NCBI GenBank assembly: GCA_964187785.1
Contig: OZ076417.1
Location: 48,174,001 to 48,238,000, forward strand
Source of the DNA: Amphiscolops sp. MND2022
Taxonomy: Eukaryota
DNA: 64,000 nt
Direction: 5' to 3'
A program made the translations under genes and the position numbers. Shown here piece after piece: positions 7,886-34,763 of this stretch. The notes beneath the pieces were generated by a model. That model made no database searches. It was given only the letters and a program-made list of their open reading frames with translations, and was not told the origin of the DNA. Every line of letters starts with the position of its first letter. The first letter of the stretch is position 1.

Positions 7886-8032
7886 TCTGCGGCGAAATTT
7901 CTTGGCTGCTGCTTTTCGAGTTTGATTGTTTCACAATGAATTTTCCGGGATAATTAGGATTACTGAGAATGTTGGGATAAATCCCTTCATTCTGATTGGT
8001 TAATCAATCTTTTTAATCCTTTCGATCTGCAG

Positions 8033-8289: not shown

Positions 8290-8342
8290 GTTTTGATTGT
8301 TGTTTTCATATCTTCTCTTTTTCAGATTTCTGCTATTTTGAG

Positions 8343-11703: not shown

Positions 11704-11727
11704 CGCTAACCCGTTATTTAGTTCCAT

Positions 11728-11900
11728 TTCTAAGATAGAATATAAAGAACCGCAGATTAGAATCAGCGGAAGAAAGAGTTTTAACATCCACTGAGTAAAA
11801 TCAGTGTAATTATTCTAAGATAGAATTTAAACAACCGCTTAGTGAAATTAGCGGAATTATTCTAAGTTAGAATTTTATTTCTAAGGTAGAATTTCTAAGA
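11728..11900. repeat. Subterminal palindromes TTCTA-N3-TAGAA
   Basis: Copies at 11728, 11813, 11860 and 11879, plus a half site at 11893. Confidence 0.85.
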
Positions 11901-12505
11901 ACGGCACTGTAGCCCTGGTGTGATTGTTGAGTTTTTTCTTAAATCAGGTGTTTTCTGTTAAGCGCTTAATCGTTGCAGTTGCTTTTAAATTATTGATTGA
12001 TAAGCGTTAGTCATAACGCGACAATATGTACTGCGCCCGGTTTCAAATTCTATCACCTCTGAGAACCTTCCAACAGTTATATTGAATTAACATGGCTTCT
12101 TTTTTGAACATTCGCAAGTACATGGAACCACAGAGAGTGTGAAGACTTTCAAACTTTCATCGGTAAAAAGAAACACTACTGATGCACTTTTATCACCAAA
12201 TTCAGTTTTCTGGTCATCAAAAATCAAATGTCTAAAAGCATTCTATAATTCTTCGGACAGGGGCGTCGTTACATTCAGGGGGAGAGTATGGGTGTTTTTC
12301 AAATCACGACTTCAGGAAATGAACAGAAAGGAAAATGTTTTCATTAGAAAATTCGCAATCAGGTTGAAAACATCTGAAAAACGTTCAATTTGCAACCCTT
12401 CATGTCTGAAATGTGGAGATTCTGCTGTTTATAGGAAGATCGGTTATTTAAAAATTGGTGGGGATTTATGATTCATTCATGGTTTTATGAGTTTTGCAAC
12501 GTTTC

Positions 12506-15286
12506 TCATAGACTGTCGGAGCAAACAAAGACAGTGGATTGTAGATGTCTATTGCACTGGACTAGACGACCCTCGAGCTGACAAGCAACACTGGCACTTC
12601 CATCGGGTCTCCGCATCCACATATCTGACTCACTGGTTATTTTGACTTGGTAGTCGTAACTCTCAAATAGGAGCTGTCCGTGTTACGACATATTATCGGG
12701 TCGTTTTGAGTAGAACTTATCCTAACTGACTTTGTTGGAGTATAGAAACTCCTAGTCTCCTCTTCTACCTCTTCTTCGGTATTTTCTCTAATGATCCCTT
12801 TTGTTTCAGGTTTAAGGAGTTTCAACATCTCTTTCTGAGATTCAATAAGGAGGGTTTTAATCTCCAACGTTATTTCTTCCTTTAAGGAAGCTCTCAAGCT
12901 TTCTAGAAGGCTATTCTCAATCCGGGGGGATTTTGGTCTAGAAGGCCCCGCTACTACATCGTCCTGGTTCGAGGAACAAGGATTTCCTACTACTATGGGT
13001 GAAATCAAGCCTTCACTTACGTTCTCACTGGTGCTTTGCTGATCGTTCCTTCTTTTTTGGCTTCTTGTTGTCGACATTTTGTAGAAAAGTTTGAGCTTGA
13101 AGAATTGAATTTCTTTCAAAGATTTTCCAACAAAGTAGAACAAGGTGAGAGTGAAATTGAGAATTCAACTGAATTGTACAATTACAAAAGACTGAGTCCC
13201 TTAATCATCAAATCCTATCATATTTATACCCTCCCAGCATCTTTTGATCACGAACAAAGCCCTAATTTTCCTTGAACAATTAGTCATTTCCTGTATTTTC
13301 GATGAAAAAATCATTTTGTTCCCAATTTTACGTCGACATTTCGTCAATTTTTGAGACACGATGTTCTTCATTCAGTATTAGTCATCAAGTTTGATCATAT
13401 CATTTCATCTCGGCGTCCTTTTGCTTCCTCCCAAGCAGGAAGTAGATATTACTTCAGTCTGTCAAACCGGAAATGATTCCCTGTTTTACTGCTTTGGTTC
13501 GCGGGAAATTGACGCTGAGATGACGCTGACGTGAACAAAAAATACCTGATTTTGAATTTCGCTTTGACAAAAATGCTATGACTAATTCCAAAATGGGAAT
13601 AATTGAACGATGCTAGGACGATATTTTATGAATTTGGACCCAAGCTTTTGCTGAAAGTGAGAATAAAATTGTGATATAAAAATAATATTTGTTAGCAACA
13701 TTGTCAAGTCGTGTCAAATGCGACAAGATCTATAAAATTAACAGCAACGTTTGTTAAATAGCAACATCAACACAACGTATATAACTGGACAGCTACTGGT
13801 CGTACTGGTATAAGAAAACATGAACACAATCACAAATACAGCGCTCAATGTCGTAGAGTACAAAAATGCAAAATATACGAAAATACATTTCTGTTATACA
13901 ATATACCTTTAATTGGAAAGAATAAACTGTGACTTCCTTATTAACCTACTGTGAGATCTTGTAATAAGATGATTTATACACATAAATTTCTTTATTGTTA
14001 AGGATACATGATTGTTACTTAATATGAGGTTGAAATTATCCTACATGTGTCAATACTCATTCTGAATTGGGACCTTAAACCAAGGAAAATCAACAATACA
14101 TCCGTTATACAATTTGTAACAGTCTGCAATCTCCTCTTTTTAGGAAACAACGGCATTTACGCGCTGAAAACCTGACTAAATTTGGCGAATTCATTCACTT
14201 TATTCAATTTCATAAACTTGTCAACGTCATGTTGACGAGTTTTCTTGGCAGAATTTAAGCTTCATAAACTTGTCAACGTCATGTTGACGAGTTTTCTTGG
14301 CAGAATAGAGATTTGACTAGTTTGACGCAATGCTGACGAGTATTTTAGAAATGAGTCTCTCGCTAGCTGCCGATGCAGTGACGTCACAGTGGCGGTAAAT
14401 TGGAATGATTTCTAGCAATGCTATTAGTATAGGCGGATAATTGGAATGATTTTCTGGTATGCATATGCGAGGCAGTGACGTCAATTGGTATGCCTTCAAA
14501 CTTGTCTGCGTCCTGCTGACGACAAATATACATGTATCCTTGCTTCTTTTGCCGCTTTGTTTACTCAGCGCAGTATTGACGTCCTAAATCACTTTAATTG
14601 CTGTTCAAAAGAGTAATTAAGCTGTCTTTCTAAGAAAAGGCTTAACTACCACGGTGTGTTGTCTCACTGTAATTTCCTGTTTTAGGTCCAAATGAAATGT
14701 AATTTTTCGGGATTAGTTTTGATGTATTTCCATTTAGATTAGCTTATGATCTCTTTAATCTTGGGGTAGTTTCATTCTAATTTTCAGGTTGTGAATGTTT
14801 CATTTGTCGTGGTTGACTCGTCCAGACAAACATGCGTGAAATCATTTTTGGATTATTTTGCTTCCTTATTTCATTTCCGCTCAAATTTGCGCGCGGTAGA
14901 TGTGTATTTTGCATTTCCGGTACTATTTTATTCAATTTTGCGAGAGCATGAAAAGCCTAGAATGCGTTCATTAGTTTTATTTGAATCTTTTGCTAGGCAA
15001 AAGTATTATTGCATTTTAAGTCACAGTTTATTTAAGTCTAGTTAGAGTTCGAGTTAATAGCCAAAATACCTTTTCGTGAGTCTTGCGGTGCACCCATGTC
15101 CACGCCCAAAGCCAACTCTCCTGCATCCGCAATCCAGTCCGGGAGCGGACTGTGACAGTCCGTACTCCAAATCATCTCTGTATTCGAAACCAACGTGGAT
15201 GAGAGGAGCGACTTTATTACCTGTGTCGGAGACCTGTTTTTGACCGGGTTTTTCTATCAATATTTTTCATTTTTCTCTCAAATTAT
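12506..15286 (-). pseudogene. Final exon of the GPCR-lectin gene (C-terminal half of a C-type lectin-like domain), split by the solo LTR
   Basis: Joining 15286-15158 to 12675-12506 (removing the LTR and one TSD) gives DNLREK*KILIEKPGQKQVSDTGNKVAPLIHVGFEYRDDLEYGQLLFESYDYQVKITSESDMWMRRPDGSASVACQLEGRLVQCNRHLQSTVFVCSDSL*. The acceptor is TTCTTAG at 15287, and the TGA is at 15269-15267. Confidence 0.75.
12681..15157 (-). mobile_element. Solo LTR of the Gypsy family at 1-7257
   Basis: Full LTR copy flanked by a perfect 5-bp TSD GTCCG (12676-12680 and 15158-15162); no internal sequence. Confidence 0.97.
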
Positions 15287-15526
15287 CTAAGAAGTATTTT
15301 TTGAATTAGCAGAAAGTTATACGGAACAAACAAAACTGAAAACTGTTATTGCTCAGTGATCGATCCAATCAGACCATTGTTTAAAATTTTGACTTGAAAG
15401 CGTTCTCTCTAGTTTGAACAAAAAAAACTGTACATGGTAAGTCAATTGCTGAACAATTTTTTGACAGTTTTTGGTAAGTCTATTCTTCCTCGGATCTCCG
15501 ACGGAGCTTTTTGGAATGCCTGTTAC

Positions 15527-16181
15527 CTGTATTTGATCTCAGCACTGCATCCACAGCTATTATTTCTTGCATCGTGATGGGATAGAAAAATGCCAGTGAC
15601 ATGTTAGAACAAAGCATCAAATGTTCATCATAAAAGAGTTCGTGTAACTGAACGGGGGATGGAAACACGTAATAACATTTTTGGAAGTCTTCGTTGGGAT
15701 AACCTCGTTTAAGGTAACAATCAAGCTTGTTGTCACGAAGTTTTAGGGAAGGAATTTCACCGAAAGATTTCACAGCTGAAAATCTTTTCAGGCGCATCTG
15801 ATTGTAATGATTTTCGAAAGAATTCTGAGATTTCTGCACAGTGATTGATTCAGCGAAAGCAAAACCATTAATTAGTATGAGTGCCACCAGGAATGCTATG
15901 GTTCCGATGAGAAGAAAGCTTTTCGCAACATTTGCTTGATTTCTGAATTGCTTGAGTGTCTTCTCTCTTTTCAATTCATTTGTTTCTGAAGCTGACGATT
16001 TCGTGAAAAACAGAAGTTGCAAAACCAAGTTGCTTGCAGCAGTAATTGCATTTGTTAATGCATTTCGTATGGGAGCACATACTGTCATGAAGAGCAGGGG
16101 TTGAATCTGAGCGAATACATAAAGGGCCATCGACTCATAAGGAATGAAGGCAAGGAACGAAACTCTTCTCCCTAGTGTCCA
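15527..16181 (-). CDS. Middle exon of the GPCR-lectin gene: TM7, helix 8, linker, extra TM helix and N-terminal half of the C-type lectin-like domain
   Basis: Acceptor TTTTTCTAG (AG at 16183-16182) and donor CAG/GTAAC (15527/15526). Encodes LYVFAQIQPLLFMTVCAPIRNAL, the hydrophobic SFLLIGTIAFLVALILINGFAFA, and DCY...KCYYVF...LC...LAFFYPITMQE. Confidence 0.7.
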
Positions 16182-16329
16182 CTAGAAAAACCATTCAAAA
16201 GGTTTTACAAGCACAATACGCTCCCTTTATTTTATCCTGCTATCTGGCACCTTATACTTTTATTACATCATACTAGTTAAATGAGCAGTTTAAATTGTCG
16301 ATTATCAAAAAACAAGGCCCAAATAAAGC

Positions 16330-16823
16330 AAACAAGACGAGAACGTCTAAAGTCGGCGCCATATCTAAGGCTCAAAAAGCGTAAAACACTTTTTTTGAAA
16401 AAAAATTGAAATTTTTGAAAAAAATTTTTCTTTCGAAAGAAGTCGCATAGTGCCGAAAAAGGTAAAAGGGGGGACCCTTCTGGATTTATTAACAAACATT
16501 CTGTTGCAAAATATCAAAAAACTCAAAGGGGGGACCCTTTGGGGACATTAAAAAATTTTTGAAAAAAAGTCGCACAGTTCCGAAAAAAATCCAAAGGGGG
16601 GACCCTTTGGGCACGTCCGGTTTTGTATGTTTCCTTGAAAAAGTAAAAAATGAAAGGGGGGACCCTTTGGAGTAAAGTTTGCCTTGGGCGGACTTGGCCA
16701 GGTGCTCTGCGCAGAATTGTAAAAAGTGGACCGATCAGTGTGAGGATTGTAGTCTGAAGAAAAAAAAAGGTCACTGCTATAGTCGGGCATTTTTCCTTAA
16801 AAGGAAAACGCGCCGACTAAAAA
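16330..16823 (+). repeat. Dispersed repeat family A (DINE-1/HINE-like non-autonomous Helentron), copy 1
   Basis: AAACAAG start, AGTCGGCGC subterminal motif inverted with GCGCCGACT, internal AAAGGGGGACCCTTT repeats, 3' hairpin 16781-16818. Confidence 0.7.
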
Positions 16824-16959
16824 CAAGGTAAGACAGAATATATGACCATTGTATAGCTGCGTATCGTCCTCCTGTGGAAACCATGGCTTTCACACTTTTG
16901 AAGCCCATGTTTTAAATGTATCACCATTTCAAAGTATTCCATTATTCTTCAGTGAAGCT

Positions 16960-17588
16960 CTCTAGGTATGTAGGAAGCTGTAGGAACTTTAGGAACCTCT
17001 AGGAAGCTTTTTTATCTGCTTGTGGGACGTGTCCGGACTTTGAAAGTGCCAGCACGTCGCCACGGGGCTCTAATTTGAAGAGTCTCCTTTGACGTATGGA
17101 AAGTCACCTTAGGAGACCATTTATGGCACAAAAACTGATGTCTAGAGCTGTAGTAAGACAACGGTCTCCCGTTTAAGCACCCTAGGCATTATCCCACTTC
17201 TTTGATGTACGCTGCTAGGTGGACGTTAAAAGTAGAGCAAAATATGCATAACGGTTTTGCCTGGTACGAGTCAGAACCAATCTTAAAACATGTCTTCGAG
17301 GTAGGACCGGCTCAAATTTTTACTAGCTTCGGGTCATACGGAAAAACATTTCAGGTTATGGTGGGGTCCGAACCCGCATCCTTCGGGACCGCAGTCAGAT
17401 GGCTGAAAACTTCGCCAAATGGAGCTGAAAGAGCTAGCCTCTTTTACACTTTTTAATATTGGAAAAAACTGAAATCCTATTGAAGTCAAAGTTTTAGCCT
17501 CGAAACCTCTCATGAGACAAAATCATCAAGAACATTTTATTCAGAAAAAAACATCAGTGATAGTTAGTTGTAATGTTCTGCCCACATA
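16960..17588 (+). repeat. Dispersed repeat family B, copy 1 (unclassified)
   Basis: GCTTGTGGGACGTGTCCGGACTTTG...GCCCACATA matches 30720-31340 and the split copy 51459-51574 plus 58119-58222. Confidence 0.9.
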
Positions 17589-17618
17589 ACATATATACTA
17601 TATATATATATATATAAA
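17588..17618. repeat. (TA)n microsatellite
   Basis: Imperfect ATATAT run. Confidence 0.9.
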
Positions 17619-20259
17619 TAGTATGCGGAGAGAAGGTCCCCAGCAGTTGTGACGAAGAGGTGACGTCCTTCACGACTCAACCTCCCCACACCCATTGATT
17701 GCAGCACCCACGACAGTTGCTGGGTTACCTCGTCCCTTTACTTACTTAGTGGCAATAACAGCGTAGTCCCAGGCCTAACTGTACTTAAGCGGACCCATAC
17801 TGACTGAGAAAAATACCCAGAGGGTTTTCCGATTGCTTTCTGAAAAATATAGCGAGCTAGACATAACACTTGAAATAGCTCAATTTTCGTCGTAGTGGTT
17901 TTGAAAGCCGAAATTTTTCGGAGAAGGGCACGACCAACGAAATACAACAAAAACGTTCCATCAGACCTATCAAGCCAGGAACAGAAAAGTTGTTTGTCTA
18001 AATCACGGAAACGTCTTTTTGTACCAATTTTGAAATTTGACAATGACAAAGCCTCAGGCACTTTCACCTGAGACTTCAAAGTAGCCCAAAAACTTTGATT
18101 TTTTGCTTGGTAGTACGAAACACTACTGTCAAGACGTTTTCTAGCCTTCCCCAATAGAAATCGAAACATTATCAATGCCTTCCTTTTGTTATACATAGAC
18201 GTGAGCCAAGGACGCCACAGACCTGAGAAGTATAACATCAAAAATAACATCTAAAATAACCCAGTCCCCTAAATAAAGTTGTAACACTTCCTTACACTAC
18301 TGTTAAAACAATTCGGAACGTCTGAATAATGAGGAAAAAAGTTTTCTTGGTGAAATTACGTTATTTCAGACTGTTCCGAGAGTGTAAAAAGTGTGATCTG
18401 CAAATTTTTGAGAAAACCTATTTGGAAGCTACCAGTTTTCGCGTGCCTATTTTCTGTTAGCATAGAGCTTAACGTTACTAACGCAGAAAAAAGCAAGCAA
18501 TTCGAACCTCTCTCCTAGTAGGAGCTGTTCAAACAGATTGCACCATCGTGTAGACCGCAAAAAGGTACGTTGGTGGTGTATTTTTCTAGGCGCCAGCACT
18601 ATTGGTGAATAAGAAATTTTAGTCGCAATTATGCTTAGAAATCATGTGAAAATGTTAAAAAAATTGAATTTTAGTTGAGCATAGTCCACTATCTTATAAA
18701 CCTCCCAGCACTAAAAAACTGACATTTTCGCACACACGGCATTAGATCTCGACGATTTGTGCATTTTGAACAGCTTGCTATTACCCAACTCTAAGAAATT
18801 TACATTTTTGTGAAACTAGAACCGAAAATGTGGTTCCAAAGGTACGTCATAGTCTTGTCGACGCGGATTGCTGAATTTGGCCCGGCGGACCTCGCTATTT
18901 TGTTTTCCTGTTATATGGGCGTATTTTACGCTCGCACACAAAGTTTCAGGTTGCTAGGATGTCTAGGAGGCGAGTTTGACGAAATTTTGCGAATTTCGCA
19001 ACTTAGTTGACAACTTTGTTAAGCGACCATATTCTACTTAGAATCAATTTTAGCGCAATCGGGGGTCAATTCCATACAACTTGGATATAGTAGTATGCGG
19101 TGTGAAACTTTCAGGCCGCTAGCAGCGCTAGAATTAGTTTTCGTTTTCCCCAGACGTGCATATTGACAAAAAAGTCGTTTCTTCTGTCAATTTTTGCGAA
19201 AAATTTCACACTTTTTGCAGGTGTAGTTGTCGAAAAGGGCTCGAACGACCCTAATACTACACCACTCATCCGTATCATTTCTTGGTGAGAAGTTTTCAGT
19301 AGCGCCATATCGACCCTAAGACCTTGGGTCCCTGAGAATACCGTCTACGAGACACACCAGTAGGAAACTTGGGAACCACCTATTTCCCGATTTTGCCTAT
19401 AAGAGTCTTCTAGGTGCGCAACCTCAATTGCAATTATACGACCCCAGTGCCTAGCCCCTTTCACGCCCATAAGTGTGTACTTTGTAAATCCACAACACCG
19501 GAAGTTCAGCACGCAGTAAGCTTCGAAATGCCAGCACAAGGCACAAGCTCAGTGGTAACTTTTATACTTAGACTGACCAGTTTTTCCAAGCGTTTCGCTA
19601 CCATTCCAAGTAAAACCATCCAAAACTCAGTCTCCGCCTCCACACTTGTTCCCAAAGTCTATCCTAGTAACAATTAAACTCATTTTTCCTAGCTCGTGCT
19701 CATCACACGAAGAGAGAAGAACACTCCCGAGACGCCCTACGTTGTTGGTACTGAAATAACCAACCTAAGACTTGCGTCAAGCGCAAAAACTTTTTGTTCA
19801 TATTATGTCGCATAGCATGTGGTTGAGGACAGAGTAGTTTAGTGTTTAAAGTAGCTCAGCTACCCCTTCGAGTAGCACTTCAAAAAAATGCTGACGAGTA
19901 AGGATCGAAAACTTTTGTTCATCTTAGTAGTCTTTAGTTTCCCCCTAGCTCGTCGTAAGACCGCCAATAGTAACCCACAAATCAATCGTTTTCCATCCAA
20001 AAACTCGAAAGCCATTGTGGGCTACAACTTCGAACTTCACATCACCAATCGTTTGAGCTCCAAGTCCGACAAAAACATAGAAATTAGTTGTCCCCTCCTT
20101 TCATCTTCATTTCAAATCTTCACAGAGGAAGGAGTAGGCAAGCCATTAAACATCCAAAACCACGCCCCAAAGTACAATAGTGCAAATAATACCCCCGCCA
20201 CAACCAGCTAGCGAACATGGACTTAAGTGAGTGGGAACACCTACAACCCATGAATGAGC

Positions 20260-23200
20260 CGTCATGAATGGACTCAGGGAGCCCAGTGGCCTTCAAGCCA
20301 CTAATCCATTGGCGAGGAATTTAGAGACATTAGTTTCTCATTTGAACGCTCATACTGGTGATTCAACGGATGCTATGGCTGCGAAAGTATTTTTAGAAAT
20401 TATGTCAGACAACGACAACATCTCCAACGCTGATCAAAACGCAGAAATAGCCTCAGCAGGCCAGCCCGAATCATCGCGAGCTTCCCGGACAGCACCAATC
20501 CAGTGGATGGCGCTGAGGCAACGTGCCAAAGCAACGCCTGGCCTCCCCTAAAGGTAACTGACTATTGCCTTGATGGTTGGCCGAATTTCAACAACAGGCT
20601 GGCGAACGAACAAACTACCACTAATGCGTAGATACAGCAAACTAGTACAAGCGCAACCCCAGAGGAAGCGCCCCCAAAAGCAACAACGCAAAGGGACCCA
20701 CCAGGTTCGCAAAGGGACCCACCAGGTTCGCACACAACAACTAGCAGTGAAGATAAAACCTCGATTTTGCGCGGATTTACTCCACGAAAAACGCAGGTCA
20801 AGCCCCAAGACAAATCAGCAGACAAACAGAAAAACCCTGTGGAAGATATTCCACCAAGGTTCACACTTCGAACGCCACCAATGGCAGGCTCTAGTGTCCG
20901 CCTAGCCGACACAGAACAAATGGACCAAACCCCGGGTTCTAGAATTAGTAGCGCGACCGCTCCGAATTCGAATACCACTATAGATACCCTATTCGACTAT
21001 CAAGGTATAAAAGAGTCGATGGCCATAAGAGAGGATTTTAGACAGAGCCTAGCCAAGCTTACCCAGGTTCAGTCGCTGCACGCGCAAGAGAACAATGAGC
21101 ATTCCCTGCGGGCTGACCTGATTATGAGGGACATAGACGAAATGCGCAGCGGACTCAAAAAATACAAGCTGAAGGACGTACGAGTTAAGAGAGTTTAGAA
21201 GCCTTAATAACCACAATCAATGATCTGATTAGACAACGTGAAAATCTAGCCGACGCGCGTATATCTTAAACGTCAGCTATTATGAAGAAAAGAAATCGTC
21301 AAGCAAACGAACGCCTGAAACTCATGTCAGAACTCATTCAAAGTCGGGATTTTGATGCCAACAACCGTATGGTGGAGCGGATGACATTCATGCAAGAACT
21401 GACATTAGTTGTCAGAGCGGTAGTAGCTTAAACCGCCGCGGCGCGCCCTTCACCAATACCGGTATCACAGAATTCAGCGAGCCAGCCCTCTACCAGTGCA
21501 GCTCCTCTCTCAGTGCAAGCCATGTATGGAAAAGCAACTCAGTCTAATGGAGAACAAGCCAAGCAGCCCAAACTGAAACCGCCCGCCCCTTACAAAAGGG
21601 AGCCTACCAAGGCGAACAAGATAGCGAGAGTGATGCAAGTCGAAAGCGAGACGTGGGAACTGACCCTATTATAGACTTTTTGTCATTCGACCCATTTGCC
21701 CGCGGTGCCTCAACTACAGGAGATTACTACTCCGCAGCGAGCGGTCTGACGACAAGAAAAACAGACTACCACACTGCGGTATCGTCTTGTACCTCGGAAC
21801 CAATGAAATTGAAGTAGCTTCTTCGGTAACGAACGCTAGATGTTTACCAAATAACAACACGTGACGATGACGTCACCACATCCCCTCTTTTAGTTGCCTC
21901 ATGCAAATCCGTCTTGATACTTCTGGGTTTGGGTTCAAAATCGTTTCGGTCTTTCTTTGGTTACTGCGGTATGTTCTGCGGTCAGCACCGGACTCAAGTT
22001 ATCAGCGTTACTAGTCTTCGGGGTGACTGGATCTTGGATATCATCATGTCCAATGTTCGGCTGAGGCTCCGCTTTCACTACGCTTGATGATGGTAGCGGT
22101 GCGATTGTCCGTCACTAGCCAAAATTGCTCGGTTGTTATCATGAAGCCAGGCCGTGTTTCGTCCTTTCCGTATAATGTAGGTTAGTCCCTCGGCTCATGG
22201 TGTGAAGTGGGTTTGTACATCACTTGTTCATCATTTTCATAAAAACCAACAACAGGGATTCTCAAGATTTTTCCAAGTAGTAATTTGGCGAGAGTGTCAC
22301 CTCTAGCATTTGAAGAATTTCTGTGACTGAACAAAATTTTATCGATATAAGTAGTCAATGAACAACCAATGTCTTTATTGTAAAATTTCAGGCTTCTTTT
22401 CATAGTTTGAACAGCTCTCTCGGCCAGTCCACTGCTTCTCGGTGAATACAAAGGGATGTCAATCTTTTTGCATCCTTGTGCTGCCAACCAGTCTTTTAGG
22501 TCTTTGGATACAAACTCCTTTCCGTTATCTGACACAAACGTATATGGTATTCCAAACCGAGAAAAGAGTGTTCGGAGACATCTGACCACGTACCGAGTTG
22601 ACCGGTCCGTGCACGGGAAGGCTTCCACCCAACCGGACCCAGCATCAGCAATGATCAGAATGTTACCGTGTTCTGCTTCATAAAGCCAGTCCATATGCAG
22701 TCTTTCCCATGGAGCGCATTCTTCCCATTTGTCAGTAGAATCAGTCAGTCTCGGTCGGTTTTTGCTGCATTCGGGACAGTTTTTGACAAATTCTTTCAAT
22801 ATCGTTGTCCATAAACGGCCACCAAGCAATCTTTTACACCAAATTTTTCAAAGCATTGATTCCTTGATGGACGCCATGAAACTGTTCAATTACTTGTTTT
22901 CGGCATGTAATTGGTATAAAAACTCTCGATCCATTATATATCAAGTCACTTTGTACTGTTAATGCATTTGGAACTTTCATAAAAGCTTTCTCCATTATGG
23001 AATAGTTTTTCCAATTACCGGTTCGGATTCGGTTCATCATCCGTTTTGTGAACTCATTCGATTGCATCTCTTCCCGTAACTCCCTAGCGTCAATCACGGG
23101 TTTCTCAAACGTAACCATTGCTACCGCAACTAAGTTGTCTTCATCGTCTTTGAACCGTGAGCGTGACATTGCATCGGCATGACCAATATCTTGACTGGGA

Positions 23201-26200
23201 GTGTATTGTACATCAAAGTCATAGGCCATCAGGGTTATTGCCCATCGCGCAAGTCTCGCTGATACAATTTTCGGTATCTGGTTGCTCGGATTGAAAATAT
23301 AGTGTAGTGGCTTGTGATCTGTTCTCAAAGTGAACTTCCTCCCCGATAGAAATTGTTGAAGTCGTGTCACTGCGATTACTACAGCAAGCGCTTCCTGTTC
23401 AATGTTGCTGCATTTCTGTTCTGCCGATGTCAAGTTTCGAGATATGTAGATTACCGGGTGATCATTCTGCGTTAATACAGCACCATTGATTTTCTCCGGA
23501 TGTGAGAGTCACTTCTTTATCCAATGAGCACGGTTGTACCAATGGTTCACTTGTAAACTTATCTACCAGTGACTGGAAATCCTTTTGATATTCACTTGAA
23601 AGATTTATCTTTTTCCCGGAGTTCATTGATACACCGCGTCTTGGCCGCATAGTTTGGAATCATCCGCCCAAAGTAGTTGATAAGTCCGATAAATGCTTCA
23701 ACTTCTTTGACATCCTTGGTGGCTGCAGTTGAAGAAGTTTTTGAACGGGCTTCTGTTCCGGCTTTACTCCTTCCGATGAAATTTCATTGCCCAAAAAGGA
23801 TAACGTTGTCGAGAATGATACGCACTTGTCTCCATTCACGGTGAAGTTCTTTGCTGCCAGCCGTTCTTTGACCGCATTGTATTTTCTCCGGATTTCGGCC
23901 TCGGTTACACCGAACAACAAGATATTGTCTTGATATGCGACGCAACCATCCAGTCCTCTGAGCATTTCTTCGATAGCTTGCTGGAAAATCGCCGCTGCAT
24001 TTTTCAATCCTTGTTGTAACCGAGTGACTCGAAATAGGCCTCGGGTTGTTTTCACTGTACACACATTTTGCGATTTTTCATCAAGTTGAATTTGCCAATA
24101 TGCATTAGATAGATCAATTTTTGCAAAGAATTTAGCGCGTGACATTTTTGAGAAAATGGTGCCAATACAAGGGACGGGGTAGGCTTCGGTACTAATTTTA
24201 TCATTTACATGTACTTTATAGTCAGCACACATTCGTAGTTTATCACCTATTATCTACACCACAGTCTTCAACAGGTTTAAGAGTTTCCCAACAACAGTAT
24301 TTCATCAATGGTTTTTTTGACTTTCCGTTCAAGTGGCAACGGTAACTTCCGTGCCGCGCAAAACATTGGTTTAGCTTCGGGTTTCAATTTAATGGAAGTT
24401 TTAGCACCTTTCACTGTTGGTAACATTTCGGATACTTCTGCTTTGGATCACCGTTCAATGGACTCTTTGCAATTATTCAAAATATCTCTTCCCAATAAAC
24501 CAAAGTTTCTATCAGCATCAACAACAGCACTTGTTTACATTAACTTGGTTGTTATTATAAAGCACCGTCGAAAAGAAGACACCGAGAAATTTCATTTTAT
24601 GCTTGTCATGTGTTTCAATTCCGTTCTTCTTTTCTTCAAGTTCCGGTTGCCCAATTTGCTTTCGCAGCTTCTTTGAAATAAGCATCAGTGATGCTCCCGT
24701 GTCTTTCATCATTTGTATTTCTTTACCATTCACTATATTTTCTCCATTGTACCATTCTTGATATAGTTGGTGTGCCCAATAAAATACGAATAGTCGGAAG
24801 TACTGCCATTGTTTTCTTCGGGATTGGCTTTTTCACCAACAAAGCGATGCGTTTGTTTCTTCATCGACACTTTTTTGCAAAATGGTTCGGCTTCTTGCAG
24901 TTGTTGCATGTTTTGCCGAAGGCCGGAAAATTCCTTGGTTTATGCTTCGTTCCGCATTTTGGGCATTCTCGAGCTTTGTTGTGGAAGCCGGTTGAAATTT
25001 TGCCATTTCTGGTTGTCTTCTTTCGTAATTGACAGTTCCGCGCAAAGGAAACTGTTTTCTTCGGTTCGTTCTATTTGTTCACAAACTGTACGGTTTGTTC
25101 ACGCTGCTGAATAACCAACAAAATGTAGTTTATTGTAGCGTCTGGGTTTTGTTGAAGATGTTCCAACACTTTTACTTTGTGTTCCGAATTTTGTAATCTA
25201 GCAATAAAGCGTAACCGTATCACGTAAGCTTCGGGATCAGCGATAGTTTTCAAATTACCGAACTCACAAAATCGTGCTGCTTCCTTCAGACGTGCCAGAA
25301 AATCTCCTGATGATTCTCCATTCCTCTGTGTTAAAGCGACGAATTTTGTTTGTTCGGCAAAAACAAGTCTTTTTCTCGGCTGCAGGTAATTTTCCAGTGC
25401 CGTTTCAGTTTCATTGAAAGCCATTGTTTCCACTTTTGTTGCTGAACAAGCGATTTGACTTTCATAAGACTTTCCACACCGCAACGGGAAAGAATATGAT
25501 CCGTTACTTGTAAATCGGTCGTTGATTCAGCTGCCGATACATCTGGTTTCTTTTCCGCCCGACATCGTACTTTGAATGCATCTATCCAGCCTAGAGCAGC
25601 TTCGGGTTCGTGCAGATTAAGTTACTTTTTTGTCTCCGTGGCTTGCATTTTGATAAGTCCACCGAACGAATTGATTATATTCTTCTCCCTTTCGGTTGAA
25701 ATGAAACCGCTAGGAAATCTTCTGTTCCTTTTGCAATCAATTTTCAAATATAAAGGAATTTCGGTGATCTGGACACCATTTGTCGTAAAGTGGTTTGAAA
25801 AGATTTTGTTCTTTAATCAGTGCAATTCAGGTTTTCGTTTTGTTTCATTATAGTCCGTACAATACAGTAAAATAACATTCAAAATAATAATTGACACCAG
25901 TTAAAATACAAGTCTATTATGTAAGAGTTTACTTGAGTTCTTTCACCGGTCATCGGTAACGCATATTGAAAGTTTCTATAAGCGTTATTTAAGCTGTGTT
26001 ATATAAGCGAACCTCGGAACCAATGAAATTGAAGTAGCTTCTTCGGTAACGATCGGTAGATGTTTACCGAATAACAGCAAGTGACGATGGCGTCACCACA
26101 AAAAGAAACTTAGACCTGAGTCAAGACGACACAGAAGCCATGGTTGATGCCAAAGAAGACGTTACAGGCACACCTAGAACAGTGCAATGACAACGGTTTC

Positions 26201-29120
26201 GACGGTCATGTGCAAATGTCTAGAACCGCTACTAGCGGCAAAGGAGACAAAAAACAAGCCGACAAAGTATAGAGGTACCCGAAACGGAAATGCCGATGGT
26301 TTGATGATGTTGATGAAGCAGCACCTAGAGAAGGCACATGCCAAAGCAACTGCTCTCGATAAAGTCTGGACGATAATCGAGCTTTTAAATATTGAAGCGA
26401 GAGATTACATCCCCAACAAGTCAGAGGCTGAAAGGGACATCAATGAGAAAGTGTTCACATTACTCGCACGAAGGGTTCGGCAGGGGATGAAGTAAAACCC
26501 ACATTCAAATGCAGTTCCGTACACGCAACCAGAATGGTGACGAGGATTACATGCAATACCTCGATGCCCTCGAGGGTTTACGCAGCCAGGCTTTCTCGAA
26601 CGAGGAGGTAGCGGGGAGACGTTACGAAATCATGCAGAAGTTCCTTGAAGGAGTGAGTAAAACAATGAGCTGAAACGGAACCTCGGGCTAATGTATGCAC
26701 TGGAGCATTACCTTGAAGCACCGCCAACAGTAGAAGTGCTTCGCTTGATGGTTCAGCAAAAGTTACGCATGCTTGGCTCTTCCCGTTCTGAAAATTGCCC
26801 TATACCGTTTCAGCAACAACAGCCAGCACCCACCTACCAACAAAATCAGGTACCAGTCACGCCCCCGCCAGCGCCTAATATTCCGCAACCGCCTCAACAG
26901 CCTGTGACTTACAGACCGCAACCACAGAAATCATTTTTCAATCGCGGAGACCCCTCACACTTGGTCATAAATTGCAGCAAGACCGCTTGAAAGTTCGTGC
27001 AACAGCAAGAGAATTCTTGCAACTCTAACCCTAGTACAGGATGAACATGTCTTTCAATACCACATGGTATCAATCATGATAAATTCCCAGCGACATTGCC
27101 GGTGCAAGGAACGTGTAGCTTTTTGTATCAACTGTTGTCGGGCATTCTGTATCTGAATGCATGGCGTCTGAGAACGTGCAGCATGAGGATCAGGTAAAAG
27201 CGGCGCAGTACGCCCCGCCCCCCGCTCGTTTTGACGGTGTAGATTCGGACGAACAAGTAAGGGTAAGTTCTGTACCTGTTGCCGGAGGACCATCGCGTCA
27301 GGAATAAGGCAGAACAGACTAGATACAACCGTCTTCCCTACAGCCACGCCACCAGTAGATGCACAAGCAAACACAGTCTTCCCCACACTTACACAAACGG
27401 CCACAACGACACGAAACGTCGTGGGCAAAATTTCGTGCCAAAAATCCACTACTGGCAGAACCACTGGCTCAAGTCGCAGAGCGACACAACATACCGTTCC
27501 CCATCTTCTTGTATAGCATCCTTTCCTTCTGGCTTCCGAATTTAGCACACGTAGAAGGAAATTGCGATGACGAACACACACAATTTTACCAAAAAGCTAT
27601 GGGAGAAGCCACAATGAGTGAAATCTTGGCATATTTGATGTCAGTAGGCCTCAGTGCCGTATACCAAGGCCCTATATTCAGCAGATCAATTCAAGAGACT
27701 GATATTAAACAACACCAATACATGCGTATTCAGCTTTCTAGTATTTGGAAGGAATCAAAGAAATTGACTGCATGCACTGATTAACACTGTGGACCTAGCG
27801 GGATCCTTCAATTGAAAACACAGTTGGACAACAACATAAAAGCTTTACTCGTATAGATTCATTCCACATGGGTCAACGTTTCAGCATAATTAATGCATGC
27901 ATTGGATGATCCCGCAGTAGTCCGAAGAGAACTAACTGAATTCCCAGGCTTCTTATTCCCCTCCCAAATTGCTAGTTTCATGCTTGTAGAAACAGAAGAC
28001 TTGCTTTCACTCATTGCTCCGATAGTTTGGCCCATATTTGGTGCCGTGGTGGCCCTTAGATACCCCACGCCACCTTTGAAGGTCGCTGCCAACGCCCCCT
28101 CATACTCAATCGTGCAATTTGCAAGTTCCGACAATTCGAGACGAGCACCTACCTACCAGGCCATAGTCCCCATCTTCGCGCTAACTTGCGACATCCAATG
28201 GCCTATACGATCATCAAGGATCGGAAGCAGGTGGAACATAATTACTCAACGCTGAAACGTGCACGTGCGCGGTGCGCTCTATTCCTGTCCCTGGAAGTCC
28301 ATCCAATTTGGTGGTTACTCATACCTCTCAACCCAGAAACAGTTGCGGTGAATCATTTCCCTGGCTGGGATGTAGCGGTGGTCCTGCGGATCCTAACAAC
28401 ACTGATACAGCACTAGGCTGCAGAGTACGCGGGGAAGCGCCCAGTGGGCTACATTATCTTTATACGTGTGACACCTCAAGGATGTACTGCGCAAGGGCGG
28501 GACCCGGTGTCAACACTGCCACCATCTTGAGTAAAACCACCTATTGGACAAAGCCAGAACTGGTAAACCAAGCTATCCAGCAGCAGCATCAAAAGTTGAA
28601 AACCGCTATGCCTTTGGTAGCACGAGACCAACTGTCAGGACCTTGCCAGTGAGCAAAGATATTCCAAGTAACCCAAAGATCGGCCTTGAGATCTTTGTTG
28701 ATTTGTTGGGTCAACAGCGAGAGCGCGGAAATCCAGTCGGCGAGGGCTATGCCATGGCAAACAAGACATACAAAGATTGGTTTGTGTAATATGGATACTA
28801 GCAACTTGCTAACAACTTGCCCGAAGTGTCGCTTGAGAGTCTGACCAAAGAGACCAATGAATCAGGGAGAGCTGCCACAGGCAGTTCTGTCTCATCAGTC
28901 GTGAACTCAAGCCATGCGTACCCGATCCATGTTCAGCTTGCTGCCAATCTGGAAATGACTGATGAGGTTTCCCTAGATGAATTGACTGACCCCTTTGCAT
29001 CATCAAGTAATGCTACACCCTTGGGCGATGAATGTGCCGGCGAGATATCCCAAATGGAAACGGCAGCCAAAGACTCAAAGCTGAATGATCTCTCAAGCAC
29101 GGGACAACCGAGCTGATCCC
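20260..29120 (+). mobile_element. Decayed Gypsy-like element: gag split by a nested insertion, followed by a long degraded unknown ORF; no pol recognisable
   Basis: Gag N-terminal fragments at 20767-21787 resume at 26101 (KPTKYRGTRNGNADG..., QFRTRNQNGDEDYMQYLDALEGLR, knuckle remnant FNRGDPSHLVINC). Boundaries are approximate. Confidence 0.7.
21788..26100 (-). mobile_element. Decayed Ty3/Gypsy (Mag/K02A2.6-like) element nested in the gag above
   Basis: 5' LTR about 25920-26100, shortened 3' LTR 21788-21880, PPT AAAAGAGGGGA at 21881-21891, candidate PBS TGGTGTCA. Fragments: gag 25071-25484, CCHC knuckles about 24850-24960, protease DTG 24518-24733, RT 23660-24232, RNase H/IN zinc finger 22834-23433, IN core 22182-22829. 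Many frameshifts. Confidence 0.92.
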
Positions 29121-29296
29121 CTCCGGAAGTGGAAAGTCAAGATTTGAATCCTGAGCCATAGGCGACGATGGATACCTCACATGACCCAAAGGACACTCGG
29201 TCTGTGGAATGAACTAAGCTAATAGCTATCGCCTAAACTAAGCCACCGAAGAAACTTGAAACCAGTGCCTTATTGAGTCAATTTCAGTTGTGGTGC

Positions 29297-29810
29297 TAGG
29301 GAAAGGGCACGGTAATAAGTTCGTACGCATAAGTTCGAGTTTTAATTTCGAATGGACTAAGTTCGAATTTTCCAAAAACCGGTAGAAGTTCGAATCACTG
29401 TGTTCGAATTTTGAACAAACCGCCGTAAGTGTAAAACGTACCTCTGATATTTCCCCAATTCATCTAGTGCCCCGCGGCCCCTTGGTGCCGCTTATGTCCC
29501 CATCTTGCTAAGCGAGGTCGAACAGGAGCATAGACCTAGCGGGAACAGAGGACGCGAAGCGATCGTAGTGGGAGCTGGTCTTTGTGACGGTGAGGGCGAG
29601 CGTGCATACACCGGATTTGCCCCACAATAGAAACGAAAAGTATTTAAAATTTTTCTGAGACATTTACGAAAGGTAATTTTTTATTCTTGACACACCGGAT
29701 ATGCCGGATATGAAACTTCGAACTTGGTGTCTCGACACTATTCCTATTCGAACTTATTCCACTAGTTCACATACGAACTTAGTAAATCGAACTTATTGCC
29801 CGAAGCCCTA
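29297..29810. mobile_element. MITE with imperfect terminal inverted repeats
   Basis: Left AGGGCACGGTAATAAGTTCG versus right CGAACTTATTGCCCGAAGCCCTA. AAGTTCG repeats cluster at the left end and CGAACTT repeats at the right. No TSD found. Confidence 0.75.
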
Positions 29811-30719
29811 TGGAACAATGTAAATTCGTACTTGGTGCTATTTTTGTTATAGCTATAGAACACTTTGTTGCTCGATTTTTCATTAAACTGGATACTACCT
29901 AGTAGGTGGGTCCCAACTTGGTGCCTCCCTACTTAAAACTCGGAAATCAAAGAGTATTGCCACGCTATTGTAGTTTTTTTGTTATTGCCGCGCGGGGCAC
30001 CACTGCACAAAAGACATTTTAACCTAAACTGATATGAATGAGTGTTAAAAATTTTTATTCAAACTGATTTTACTTCAAAAAGAAAGTGAAAGTTCAAAAT
30101 ATGCTCGACAGAATCATCAAAACAAGAGATATTTGAAATATTGTATTATTACACTTTTGTCTTTTGCAAGAATCTAAGGAAGCTACAACCTGTAATGACG
30201 TTGCTAAAAAAGCCACTGGTTATACATATAATGAATCCTCTCTCGTTTGCCGGGGACGACAAACTAAGGCTCGGGGAGGGTGTAACGTCAACCAGTTGGC
30301 ACCAAAATTTCGAAGAAAGATCAAAACATGCGCGTCTCAAAATGGCCGGTCCCTGAAGTTGGAAGAGAGGCGTAAGAAGACCGAAAACTAAGAGACTCTT
30401 TCTGAAAACACCGAAAAATCTGTATAGTCAGACACCCGAAGACATCCAGAAGCTAAAACAAGCATAGCCCAGTGTTGTGCCATCTGATCCAGGAATAACA
30501 AGAGCCTGGCAGAAAGATGAAGGTTATGCAATACCTCTACGAATGTTATTCGAGACTCGGAACGCGTCGAAAACAGTCCCGGTTACCTTTTCAGTGCTAT
30601 TCTGTAGTGTTTTTATAGATTATCAGATGACTGATAATGTCGGACCTTGCAGGTCGCAACTTCAAATCTCATACACAGAATATAATGTACTTTGGCTAAA
30701 CACCTGTTTTTGGACCTCG

Positions 30720-31340
30720 GAGGTTTGTAGGAGGCTGTAGGAACGTTAGAAAACTTAAGGAATCTTTTTACGTGCTTGTGGGACGTATCCGGACTTTGAG
30801 AGTGCCGGCACGTCGCCTCGGAGCTCTAATTTGAGGAGTCTCCTTTGACGTTTAGAAAGTCTCCTTAGGAGACCATTTTGCGACAAAAACTGATGCCTAG
30901 GGCTGTAGTAAGACAACGGTCTCCTGTTTAAGCACCCTAAGAATTCTCCCATTCATTTGATGTACGCTGCTAGGTGGACGTTACAAGTAGTGCAAGTTGT
31001 GCATAACACTTTTGCCTGGTCAGGATTATAATCAATCTTGAAACATGTCACCGAGGTAAGACCGGCTCAAGTTTTACTTGTATCGGGTTATAATGAAAAA
31101 CATTTTAGGTTATGGTGGGGCCCGAACCCGCATCCTTGGGACCGCAGTCAGATGGCTGAAAACTTCGCAAAAGGGAGCTGAAAGAGTTAGCTTCTTTCAC
31201 ACTTTTTAATATTGGGAAAAACTGAAATCCTATTGAAGTCAAAGTTTTAGCCTCGAAATCTCGCATGAGACAAAATTATCAAGAACATTTTTATCAGAAA
31301 AAACATCAGTGATAGTTGGTTGTAATTTTCTGCCCACATA
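30720..31340 (+). repeat. Dispersed repeat family B, copy 2
   Basis: Colinear similarity to 16960-17588. Confidence 0.9.
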
Positions 31341-31427
31341 TAAAGGGGGAGAAAAATCATATTCTGTGTTGCTTTTTCAAACAGATCTAACAAATCTCCA
31401 TTTTTTTACACCACCAAATGAATTCTA

Positions 31428-31515
31428 CTCATCATGGTGCTGTTGGTAGTGCGCCTGCTTGGCAGACACGAGGTCGTGGGTTCGAACCCATGCTGATGCG
31501 TTAGATTTTTAGCGG
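31428..31515 (+). mobile_element. tRNA-derived SINE head or tRNA pseudogene (tRNA-Ala-like)
   Basis: GGTAGTGCGCCTGCTTGGCAGACACGAGGTCGTGGGTTCGAACCC aligns by eye with the eukaryotic tRNA-Ala D-arm to T-arm region. B box GGTTCGAACCC is present; no proper acceptor stem. Confidence 0.65.
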
Positions 31516-32399
31516 GCGTCTTGTTAGATTTTCCATTGTTTTTGTAACTTTCATTCAAATTGCCTCGACGTTAGTTACGTTTTACGCTATGCTTGGCAAA
31601 TAAATTATTCAATCGATGACATTAGCGACTTGGAATCGAAGGCAATTTCTTTTCAAAAAGTTTTCACTAGGGATCGTAGCATTATTAGGACTTATGTCAT
31701 GGTACTTTGCAGAAGAATACAAAAATGAGTGATATTAGAGATGCTGGAAGACAAAATACAAAAACTCGGATTCAACTACCTGTACAAAAACTCAAACATT
31801 TGTCGACCAGTAGTTGTGGGTGAGACTACTGAACAGACCGAAGCGAAGGAAAGAGCGTTCATGGACGGAATGTATGTAAGGACACTCTTATTGATGCCCG
31901 GGGGAGTGTCGCTGGCTGCCAACTGCGATGGCAATTGGAATTCCATTTCCTGTAACTATCACCGAGCCCGGAAAGATTCCATTGAACTAAAAGGCACATA
32001 GGCCTTTACAAACTCAATTCATTCAGTTATGTATTTTCCAATGAAAATATTAAAATTCACAGAAATTGTACGTTTTGTTTCTTTTATATACTAAAAATGT
32101 GCCAAAGAGGACACCAAGGCGTACATGGAAAGGAAACCTTTTCAAATGTTTCCTTGCCTGTCGCCGCGGACAGCCACTCACATTCTTTCAATAACCAAAT
32201 CAAACTAGAGTATTCAATAATGTAGTGTTCAGTTGTTTGTACAATAATTAAAGGCCTCTCTGACTGAGACGGATAATAAATACAGTTAGCCAGTTAATGC
32301 CTATTTTGAACAAGGGTGGTTTATTTTGAATTTTAGCGGTTTCTGATCTAATTATAGCTGAATGATGCTCTAAATTTGGGATGTCACCCTAGCCTGTAA

Positions 32400-33114
32400 A
32401 TACCCAGGACACGATGTCCCAGGGACATAAGTTTTACAAGTTGCGATAGTATCAGTTGCTATTTTATAACTTACTGAACAAACATTGTTTTTTCAGAACG
32501 AAAGTTTTTATTAATACTTGCTAGAACAATTCAAATACTTCCTCTAGCACAAACAATGATGCCTTCAACAAGGAGACAAAACGCAAAAGCTTGAAAATCT
32601 AGAAAAGTGGACATGATGCCCGATTTTGACAACACGGACACGATGATTGGGAATGATGACATTAACCCAATTGAAAGAGAGCTAGCAAAAACAATTAAAG
32701 GATCTTCAAATCATTATTATACTCAATTCTCACCCTTGAGGAAATACTTTTCAGGAAAATGAATTTAGTGATTTCGGTCATGAGAACACTATTCGTAGAC
32801 AGAATAGATACCTGGAAGCCATGGAAACATTCACAAACTTGAGGTTGTCTCAAGAAAGAGACTCTATGATGTCCATGATTCACTCACAGGTTAATAAGGC
32901 CATTTGTTCTGTGAAAGCTGCGATAGCTGTAGGTGTAATCTCAGAGATTTGGTGAGTTCACTATCTTCAGGAAATAGGGACACTGAGTCGGGTTCGTCAT
33001 AAAACAACCAGGAAAACATTGACAGAACAACTGGGTTTTAATCTTAAACTGCAAAAAAGGACTGTAGGTCTGCGTACGATTTAGGAGACACGGATGACCT
33101 TAGTCCTCACAACA
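32400..33114 (+). mobile_element. Relic LTR/gag N-terminus of a related Gypsy family
   Basis: ATG at 32559 reads MPSTRRQNAKA*KSRKVDMMPDFDN..., resembling the reading frames at 45734 and 46890. Ends in CA near 33111-33114. Confidence 0.55.
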
Positions 33115-33396
33115 AGACACCCGTTAAGCAGCGGGATATTTTCCGCTTCCAAGGCCCTCACCAGCTGAGCCATAGGTATGGCTCCAACTGAGCCAAAGCT
33201 TTTTAAGAACTTGACCATTTTAATTACTAGTATTATAGTAAATACTACTAATATAGCTACTAGTAAATTAGTCAAGTAACTAAAATAGTTAAGTAACTAA
33301 GTGAAGTACACTGAGATTGTGCAGATTTTGCAGAATTTGGAAAAAAACGCAACACAGATTATGATTTTCCTCCCCCTTTATATGTGGTCGGAAAAG

Positions 33397-33778
33397 AAAC
33401 AAGCCGGGAACAGCCCAAGTCGGCGCCATATCTAAGGCTCAAAAAGACTCGAAAACCACTTTTTCTACAACTGGAGACAACAAAAGCTCTCAAAAATCTT
33501 AAAATTGAGAAAAAAAAAATCCGAATTTTTTTTGAATTTTTTTTGAAGTTTCCGGTAAGTCGCATAGTGCCGAAAAATGTAAAAGGGGGACGCTTTTTAT
33601 CTCATGTTAGACGCTTTGGATGCGTTGAAAATGAAGTACTAAGTACATATGGTAAAAATTGGTAAATGTGCATTAATTGCCTCAATGCACAAAAAGTGGA
33701 CGTTCGCGTTGAACTGACGAAAAAAAAACTAGCCACTGTAAGAGTCGGGATTTTCTTCGAAAACGCCGACTAAAAAAG
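33397..33778 (+). repeat. Dispersed repeat family A, copy 2
   Basis: AAACAAG...AAGTCGGCGCCATATCTAAGGCTCAAAA and 3' hairpin AGTCGGGATTTTCTTCGAAAACGCCGACT. Confidence 0.85.
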
Positions 33779-33839
33779 ACCTGGTTGTCTGGGCACTGAA
33801 AATCAGCACGGTTAAGCTATTTAACAGTTATTATCTAAC

Positions 33840-34763
33840 CTTGTAGACAAACGATACGCCCCAACACAAAGCCCAGAGTAACGTATTCAGGACAAACGCT
33901 AGAGTTATGCTTTTGTTAGTGTTTGCATTTCGTTCCGACTTGAGTAGCTTGAGAGACACTTTCACGTAAAAAAACGCAGAAGTGAAAAACATAGGGACAA
34001 AAATAAATCCGATATAACCGAAAAATAAGACATAATCAACTTCTTCTTCCATGACGTCTAAAACATCAAAATCAAAAGACACGTGGTCACCCAGAATCTC
34101 GCCCGCGAAACAACTTGGGCGAAAAATAGTCAGATAAAGGGCCTCTCCTGTTATTAAAATTACAATTAGAAGAATGAGAAAGGTGAAAAACTTCACGTAA
34201 AACCTCCCTTGAGTCCATTCTCGTAGCTTGAAAGGATAACACACGCTCATAAAGCGGATAAACGCCACAGCTGTTACTGTTAAACCTGTAGATCCTCTGA
34301 CAATAGCGTCACAGATCACAAAAACGTAGCAAAGCTTTTGTTTGGCATCAACGGAGACGTTCGCGATAAACTCAGGCTTCCCAAAGACGAGAAAGTAGAC
34401 TCGGTAAAGGTTCGAGTGGTTAATTAGAATCCACACCAAAACAATATTAGCCAGGAGAGGAATTATGCCAGTTGAGAAGAAATCCAATATTGATTGGACC
34501 AAAATTGGAAACATCTGTGCAGTTCTCAGAGTTTTGGACAGAATCAGAATTAGAGCTATGGCCGCGTTTAGCATCATACCCACTGAGTTGCCGGCTATTG
34601 CCCAATAAATTTGATAAACAGAGTCATGGGTAGCTAAGTCCGATGCTAGAGTTTTGCGTTCAAGTATTTGGAAGAAGTAGTGCATGTTCATGCTCGAGGT
34701 CGTTTCGAACCAGTTGTAATTTCCACCCCGCCTTGTTGTATATTCATACCTTGACCACGTCAT
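33840..34763 (-). CDS. Class A (rhodopsin-like) GPCR, TM1-TM6; first coding exon of the GPCR-lectin gene
   Basis: TM1 Asn (MLN), TM2 Asp (ILD), TM3 Cys and IRF..VCYP (DRY position), ECL2 Cys, TM5 VP...FY, TM6 LCW. The ORF lacks TM7 and ends at AAG/GTTAGA, a phase-0 donor. Confidence 0.88.

Follow-up and report, generated by a model that had tools for sequence, protein, structure and literature searches.

Class A (7tm_1) G protein-coupled receptors (GPCRs), among them lineage-expanded invertebrate groups of orphan or chemoreceptor-like type, are assumed to have an intracellular end, and their C-terminal tail is the site of kinase and arrestin action. Type II receptors with a C-type lectin-like domain (CTLD), such as CD23, NKR-P1, CLEC-2, CLEC9A, LOX-1, dectin-1 and langerin, are built from an N-in anchor helix, a neck and a long-form CTLD with the disulfides C0–C0′, C1–C4 and C2–C3. 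Adhesion GPCRs with a Lectin_C or Gal_Lectin domain, and polycystin-1, have a 7tm_2 or 11-helix core and carry the lectin domain before the first transmembrane helix (TM1), usually with GAIN/GPS (PMC8687355; PMC9672506). Here we have analysed a stretch of 64,000 nucleotides (the window; C9:48174001-48238000) from a chromosome-scale animal assembly of 1.07 Gb. Most probably, the window holds a three-exon member of a family of class-A-like GPCRs with an eighth transmembrane helix (TM8) and a C-terminal CTLD, and this copy is broken by a long terminal repeat (LTR) in the assembly. An earlier note on this DNA had proposed an intact gene of this kind.

The family resembles class A receptors in its seven-helix (7TM) core, in the Arg of DRY, in the CW of TM6 and in the (N/Q)PxxF/Y of TM7, as well as in its mostly intronless genes, which lie in clustered arrays with pseudogenes. 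In contrast to class A receptors, the chain continues past helix 8 to a linker, to TM8 and to an ectodomain of 150-250 residues; the acidic residue of DRY has been lost, and the clade of the window's gene is also without N7.49, Y7.53 and P6.50. With the type II CTLD receptors, which are the best structural matches of the tail, the family shares a predicted N-in anchor helix, the neck and the long-form CTLD with its disulfide pattern, and the natural killer (NK)-type members likewise have no Ca2+/sugar motifs. In the family, however, the anchor helix is joined to the end of a GPCR, where the type II receptors have a short signalling tail, the tail is too divergent for Lectin_C, and some members carry Asp-Tyr inserts in the long loop. 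The likeness to adhesion GPCRs and polycystin-1 lies in the pairing of a GPCR-kind membrane receptor with a lectin-fold sensor predicted to be extracellular, whereas here a 7tm_1 core is followed first by an added TM8, an extra helix that theirs do not require, and then by the domain.

No description of a protein combining 7tm_1, TM8 and a C-terminal CTLD was found in the open-access literature, in agreement with the statement in the earlier note that the architecture was not known from characterised GPCRs. A word-indexed protein search returned only eight ENA proteins, none with a name, and a cluster look-up gave no names either; the ESM Atlas contributed only ordinary rhodopsin/Srw-like clusters of 300-420 aa (score 0.79), and none of the top 30 AFDB clusters spans both core and tail. 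The family is large, lineage-specific and apparently undescribed.

The gene in the window and its relatives

The gene lies on the minus strand, and window coordinates are used here. Exon A (34763-33840) is an open frame of 308 codons that starts with ATG and encodes the N-terminus and TM1-TM6; it ends in AAG, followed by the phase-0 GT donor GTTAGA. Exon B (16181-15527; 5′ boundary between TTTTTCTAG and TGG) is free of stops over 218 codons plus one base and encodes extracellular loop 3, TM7, helix 8, a basic linker, TM8, a neck and the first half of the CTLD-like domain, after which ACAG meets the phase-1 donor GTAACA. TM7 (16130-16074; residues 326-344 of the joined product), placed by hydropathy and by alignment with the NPxxF/Y of paralogues, has QPLLF at the NPxxY position, and is followed by an amphipathic helix-8 stretch and by the linker with its seven Lys or Arg residues. 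TM8 (15917-15861; residues 397-415, FLLIGTIAFLVALILINGF) is the most hydrophobic segment of the protein, with a Kyte-Doolittle hydropathy of 2.54 over 19 residues. The tail begins within exon B, with C..GY..CYYVF..LC..LAFFYP..E, and the joined product displays the seven hydropathy peaks of a 7TM core. In all this the earlier note was right: the open frame and phase-0 donor of exon A are there, and exon B is open, with QPLLF, helix 8, a second hydrophobic helix and the splice sites it had named. Intron 2 (15526-15221; 306 nt, GT..AG, phase 1) is found only in the C9/C11 clade, and paralogues on C3 and C7 have no intron at its position.

The same pieces recur across the genome. Exon B has 14 matches; copies on C3, C7 and elsewhere carry TM7, TM8 and the complete tail in single open reading frames (ORFs) of 288-317 aa, and a copy on C2 runs from TM3 through the end of the tail within one ORF of 465 aa. 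For exon A there are 119 matches. Many of these are contained in ORFs of 600-721 aa, and the ones that were read out have the 7TM core, TM8 and the tail in one frame, with the whole receptor in ORFs of 650-711 aa. The tail of one single-ORF family gene gave at least 150 matches, about 25 of which share a single ORF of 550-721 aa with the 7TM core. Since the paralogues have the same pieces in the same order, the arrangement is not due to chance. At the level of the family, the architecture put forward in the earlier note (7TM, an eighth TM helix and a C-terminal CTLD fold) is therefore borne out in one reading frame in many paralogues, and single-ORF genes with all three parts, for which it had suggested a search, are numerous in this genome.

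A phase-0 intron after TM6, with the next exon beginning with W, is common to the genes on C9, C11 (three copies), C7 and C3, and this conserved intron is the evidence from which, by homology, the A-to-B splice of the window's gene is predicted. Exon A is 82% identical to its C11 paralogue. Between the window's gene and this closest paralogue the synonymous divergence (dS) is 0.34 and the ratio of nonsynonymous to synonymous divergence (dN/dS) is 0.30 (0.27 for exon A and 0.34 for exon B), so purifying selection has acted on both halves over most of this period.

The database relatives that were looked up are all ENA contigs from two samples, one of which is of this species (100% identical protein). 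The other (ERZ26859043) is from a second species, and it encodes proteins of 619 and 633 aa with 7tm_1, each in a single ORF and from two different subfamilies (L061 and L063); the DNA of the 619-aa gene is at best 67% like this genome. Since the second species has the same design, the fusion predates the split of the two species.

Intron 1 (33839-16182) is 17.7 kb long here, against 1.8-2.4 kb for its counterpart in the C11 and C7 paralogues, because a degraded Ty3-like LTR element fills most of it. Two repeats of 627 bp (16964-17588 and 30721-31340; 88% alike) bracket this element, and ORFs with RVT_1, RT_RNaseH and rve lie at 24232-22185 on the minus strand. A search for RNA runs of the organism turned up DNA runs alone, four of them and from one sample, and these give unitigs. 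Just upstream of the exon B acceptor, at 16286-16400, the summed unitig depth reaches millions, while the exon has about 30; this stretch must be an extremely abundant short repeat, and parts of it are also found near the C11 paralogue.

The class A core and the lectin-like tail

R3.50 is invariant across the family. The other microswitches read IRF, CWGV and QPLLF in the window's gene, and xRY, CWxP and NPxxF in the larger subfamilies. Paralogues L014, L017 and L021 pass the 7tm_1 cut-off of 30.5 bits (32.5-39.7 bits), L018 stays below it (25.1 bits), and L015 and L016 have no 7tm_1 match. A full-length model of the 645-aa paralogue P0016 reached a mean confidence (predicted local distance difference test, pLDDT) of 66, with 80-90 in the 7TM core and 70-89 in the CTLD; a single long helix (405-470) spans TM8 and the neck with lower confidence (35-60). 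Its core is matched by Foldseek with probability 1.0 to NK1R, ETB, NTSR1 and M4 (TM-score by target 0.56-0.72), and has a class A fold.

An alignment of 27 tails (A1) has three invariant and three more conserved cysteine columns, and the motifs RCYF, L..EQ..C...A.L.YPR...E, WFxHLG, F.S.DG, P.VC and.C....ICS.DF. At the WIGL-like position, large subfamilies have WFxHLG and the window's gene has IHVGF. Six cysteine columns are common to four paralogues and the window's tail once the LTR is taken out of it, so that the six tail cysteines counted in the earlier note all align, and the pattern is that of the conserved CTLD cysteines C1 to C4 with the long-form pair C0–C0′. The three PDB entries that the A1 profile matches best are all CTLDs, at weak scores (CD94, with E 0.016; tetranectin; and a binder derived from tetranectin). 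In a set of 1.84 billion representative proteins the profile has no more than 130 matches, nearly all at the C-terminal end of the matched protein; the lowest-ranking of these is a canonical EPN-bearing multi-CTLD protein (library-wide E 9e-4), and hhalign gives E 5e-4, in register.

The fold itself comes from a paralogue. The L005 tail, which is 31% identical to the window's LTR-free tail, gave an AlphaFold2 model with pLDDT 80 and a predicted TM-score (pTM) of 0.70, and its top 50 PDB and top 30 Swiss-Prot matches in Foldseek are all CTLDs, among them CD23, NKR-P1B, dectin-1, LOX-1, langerin and SP-A in the former and KLRB1, CLEC3A and tetranectin in the latter. When superposed on CD23 with VIA-align, it covers 123 of the 128 CD23 residues at 2.8 Å with a Z of 12.4. 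The suggestion in the earlier note that the tail is a CTLD thus stands for this modelled paralogue. The note was also correct that the motifs of Ca2+ site 2 (EPN, QPD and WND) are absent, which we checked in the window's tail and in the family consensus; judged by its sequence, the tail would be filed as lectin-like, not as a lectin.

The long-loop region of the CTLD is hypervariable across the family. In one subfamily (L014, L017 and L018, at C9:43.69 Mb, C6:5.62 Mb and C3:82.86 Mb) the loop contains 30-60 residues of Asp-Tyr repeats (DYDYDY..), an insert that is acidic and tyrosine-rich.

The retrotransposon within exon C

The last exon departs from the earlier account. An AG is present at 15288-15287, but the junction 15527/15286 proposed there reads GAT AAT TTG AGA GAA AAA TGA, and so runs into a stop (15269-15267) six codons on. 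Frame and paralogue spacing are both preserved with the acceptor GACACAG before GT, where exon C starts at 15220; this acceptor yields ..LRSNT-G-NKVAPLIHVGF.., spaced exactly as in uninterrupted paralogue tails. The 5′ part of exon C (15220-15158, ..GNKVAPLIHVGFEYRDDLEYG) ends in the first copy of a target-site duplication (15162-15158). It is followed by an LTR of 2,477 bp (15157-12681, minus strand) from a young and very abundant BEL/Pao-like retrotransposon, by the second copy of the duplication (12680-12676) and by the 3′ part of the exon (12675-12506), which holds three conserved cysteines, the tail end ..ACQLEGRLVQCNRHLQSTVFVCSDSL and the TGA stop (12508-12506).

The insert has the marks of an LTR retrotransposon. 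Its termini are TGTCAC...GTAACA (TG..CA), and the 5-bp duplication CGGAC is found on both sides. In a genome DNA search with 15300-15030, the part from about 15158 downwards had over 1,000 matches among first-look candidates, with identities of 98-100%, and the LTR matches are often paired, with starts 13.87 kb apart. In a self-comparison of the window with 20 kb of flank, the copy in the gene is 99.6-99.7% identical to the LTR at 7258-4779 and to another just outside the window, and the unitig depth of the LTR is 100-10,000 times that of the flank. The insertion site is empty in the paralogues, and the LTR-free sequence is colinear across it with two of them on C11 (L025 and L027), one of which reads ..FEYRDDLEYGQLLFESYDYQVKITSESDMW.. 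uninterrupted. When the LTR and one copy of the duplication are removed in silico, the result is a frame of 1,812 nt and 603 codons ending ..VACQLEGRLVQCNRHLQSTVFVCSDSL. As assembled, the frame enters the LTR and stops after 581 codons, so that the product lacks three conserved cysteines and the final strands of the CTLD. Neither length is the roughly 625 codons given before, and the intact hidden gene of the earlier note is not supported at this locus, since one splice junction was wrong and an LTR splits the last exon. In the reference assembly, the window's copy is a recently transposon-disrupted member of the family.

Two other ways of reading through the exon were considered. A frameshift was suggested by a frame-2 stretch, MIWSTDCHSPLPDW.., that resembled the W.DG of CTLDs, and was rejected because this stretch is LTR sequence. 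A cryptic splice within the LTR (donor GTAT after AAAAG near 15070; acceptor AACCAG before T near 12650) is in phase, is supported by no evidence, and would leave about 30 LTR-coded residues in the CTLD core; it may be what the earlier note had used.

Of the alternatives to our interpretation, the one that fares best is that the gene is not dead, the LTR being present on one haplotype or partly an artefact of assembly, and that an uninterrupted allele for the full 603-residue receptor exists in this individual or in the population. We regard this as a serious possibility that falls clearly short of being the likelier one. One unitig from a single run (X2) joins 12675 to 15158, skipping exactly the LTR and one copy of the duplication, with six letters that fit both sides, and the alignment of a 148-nt contig from another run (X1) ends at the same insertion boundary. 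The assembly moreover contains the 1-kb 3′ flank twice (99.7%), and its odd arrangement with the three LTRs resembles tangled haplotypes, and a dN/dS of 0.30 means constraint until recently. However, the joining contig is one contig from one of four runs of a single sample, its shorter side has 28 letters where the bridging rule asks for 31, and it could derive from a repeat. The assembly itself carries the interrupted form only.

A further copy of the BEL/Pao-like element lies downstream on the minus strand (11675-4779), as a 4.4-kb internal 3′ part (11675-7259) and the LTR 7258-4779, the latter being the 5′ LTR of a full 16.35-kb copy that extends past the low end of the window. ORFs for a DUF1759 gag and for protease, reverse transcriptase and RNase H are found at 5244-1028, and it is from these that the element is assigned as BEL/Pao-like. 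Across window positions 4779-15158 and the adjoining C9:48163905-48174000, three LTR copies of 2.48 kb are oddly arranged: after LTR-A come 1,008 bp from the 3′ flank of the gene and then the 4.4-kb internal 3′ part, after which LTR-B opens the canonical 16.35-kb copy ending in LTR-C, and beyond LTR-C the same 3′ flank recurs (99.7% identical). A single insertion does not account for this arrangement, which may reflect tangled haplotypes or a rearrangement. The close paralogue at C11:21.81 Mb (L003/L004/L025), with stops in exon B and an uninterrupted exon C, is a pseudogene that keeps the empty insertion site. Elsewhere in the window, a second ORF with DUF1759 (BEL/Pao-type gag; 447 aa) was found at 53877-55217, and the other long ORFs tested had no Pfam match.

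Topology, proposed mechanism and significance

Among 26 family members, the hydropathy of TM8 averages 2.48 (range 2.0-3.0 over 19 residues), and Lys plus Arg number 5.7 per 20 residues before TM8 versus 2.7 after it; in the window's protein, six such residues are found in the 20 before TM8 and one after it. The tails of the 26 members have 6-9 cysteines and N-glycosylation sequons. An extracellular CTLD would be the placement that fits the charge bias, the conserved cysteines and the sequons.

It could also be that the locus yields two products, a GPCR terminating close to helix 8 and, from an internal start (such as the ATG at 16130 or another closer to TM8), a type II lectin-like receptor of its own, with TM8 as signal anchor and the CTLD. 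Taken as a unit, the cytoplasmic stub, TM8, the neck and the CTLD do look exactly like a type II NK-type receptor, and the link between the two halves is predicted from the genomic frame. We nevertheless consider two products improbable, since exon B reads from TM7 to TM8 without a stop, as do dozens of paralogues that have diverged to about 20% identity, including those with ORFs of 650-711 aa, the frame of the linker is kept under a dN/dS of 0.34, and the ATG at 16130 sits within TM7. More improbable still is an eighth segment that does not span the membrane, with a cysteine-rich tail that is cytoplasmic or of another fold. The low confidence of TM8 and neck in the full-length model (pLDDT 35-60), the silence of Pfam on the tail and a topology read from hydropathy and charge would allow it; against it stand the hydropathy of 2.0-3.0 over 19 residues in 26 of 26 members with a positive-inside bias, six invariant or near-invariant cysteines in the CTLD disulfide pattern together with sequons, and a match at Z 12.4 over the whole CD23 domain. 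The gene exactly as drawn in the earlier note, intact, of about 625 codons, spliced at 33840/16181 and 15527/15286 and with its tail read to 12506, retains next to no probability: exons A and B, their splice sites and the AG at 15288-15287 are as described, but the reading frame refutes the second junction, 15157-12681 is an LTR and neither intron nor exon, and the paralogues fix the start of exon C at 15220.

Several points weigh against the assignment of the window's gene to the eight-helix family as a transposon-broken, three-exon member. An insertion-free allele may exist, given the DNA contig that joins 12675 to 15158. The A-B and B-C splices, expression and a single transcript are predicted from homology, and the topology from hydropathy and charge bias. 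Exon A matches 7tm_1 at E 7.8e-5 and 22.7 bits, below the cut-off, in a comparison of exon A by itself, TM7 being on a separate exon. With Pfam Lectin_C, a check that the earlier note had proposed, neither exon B nor any of nine paralogues had a match at E up to 1. The fold models are those of paralogues 22-31% identical to the window's tail, and not of the window's own product. Finally, with QPLLF for NPxxY, CWGV for CWxP and IRF for DRY, as read from the sequence, G-protein coupling is uncertain in the window's clade.

In the mechanism that we propose for the eight-helix family, the chain past TM7 and helix 8 would run through the basic cytoplasmic linker, cross the membrane for the eighth time and end outside in a helical neck and a long-form, six-cysteine CTLD, so that TM8 would do the work of a signal anchor, as in a type II lectin receptor, here attached to a GPCR. 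Such a CTLD, without a Ca2+/sugar motif and with a hypervariable loop, would probably bind diverse non-sugar or protein ligands, and its occupancy might be relayed in cis to the 7TM core, with the CTLD docking on the extracellular loops or the necks driving oligomerisation. That the copies are many, lie in clusters and are in part pseudogenes suggests a role in chemosensory or immune recognition. In its widest form the proposal is that this animal and at least one other species use at least 150 eight-helix class A GPCRs as a main system of chemosensory or immune recognition, in which a hypervariable C-terminal CTLD captures the ligand and gates the 7TM core in cis and the former C-terminal tail has become a fourth cytoplasmic loop. 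We advance it tentatively, as having slightly less than an even chance of being correct. If true, a repertoire with its ligand-binding ectodomain at the C-terminus would be a receptor design that has not been described before.

Since the genes have no Lectin_C match and no names, annotation pipelines will take them for ordinary orphan GPCRs or divide them into separate genes. The window's copy is an example of a very recent retrotransposon hit on a gene of the family. A large and constrained family that would convert the C-terminal tail into a loop, and place a lectin-fold sensor outside the cell, would alter the picture of class A receptors. It would offer a natural test of how an ectodomain tethered after TM7 signals to the helix bundle, of whether control by arrestins and G protein-coupled receptor kinases survives when the C-terminal tail becomes a loop, and of how chemoreceptor or immune repertoires acquire new binding modules.

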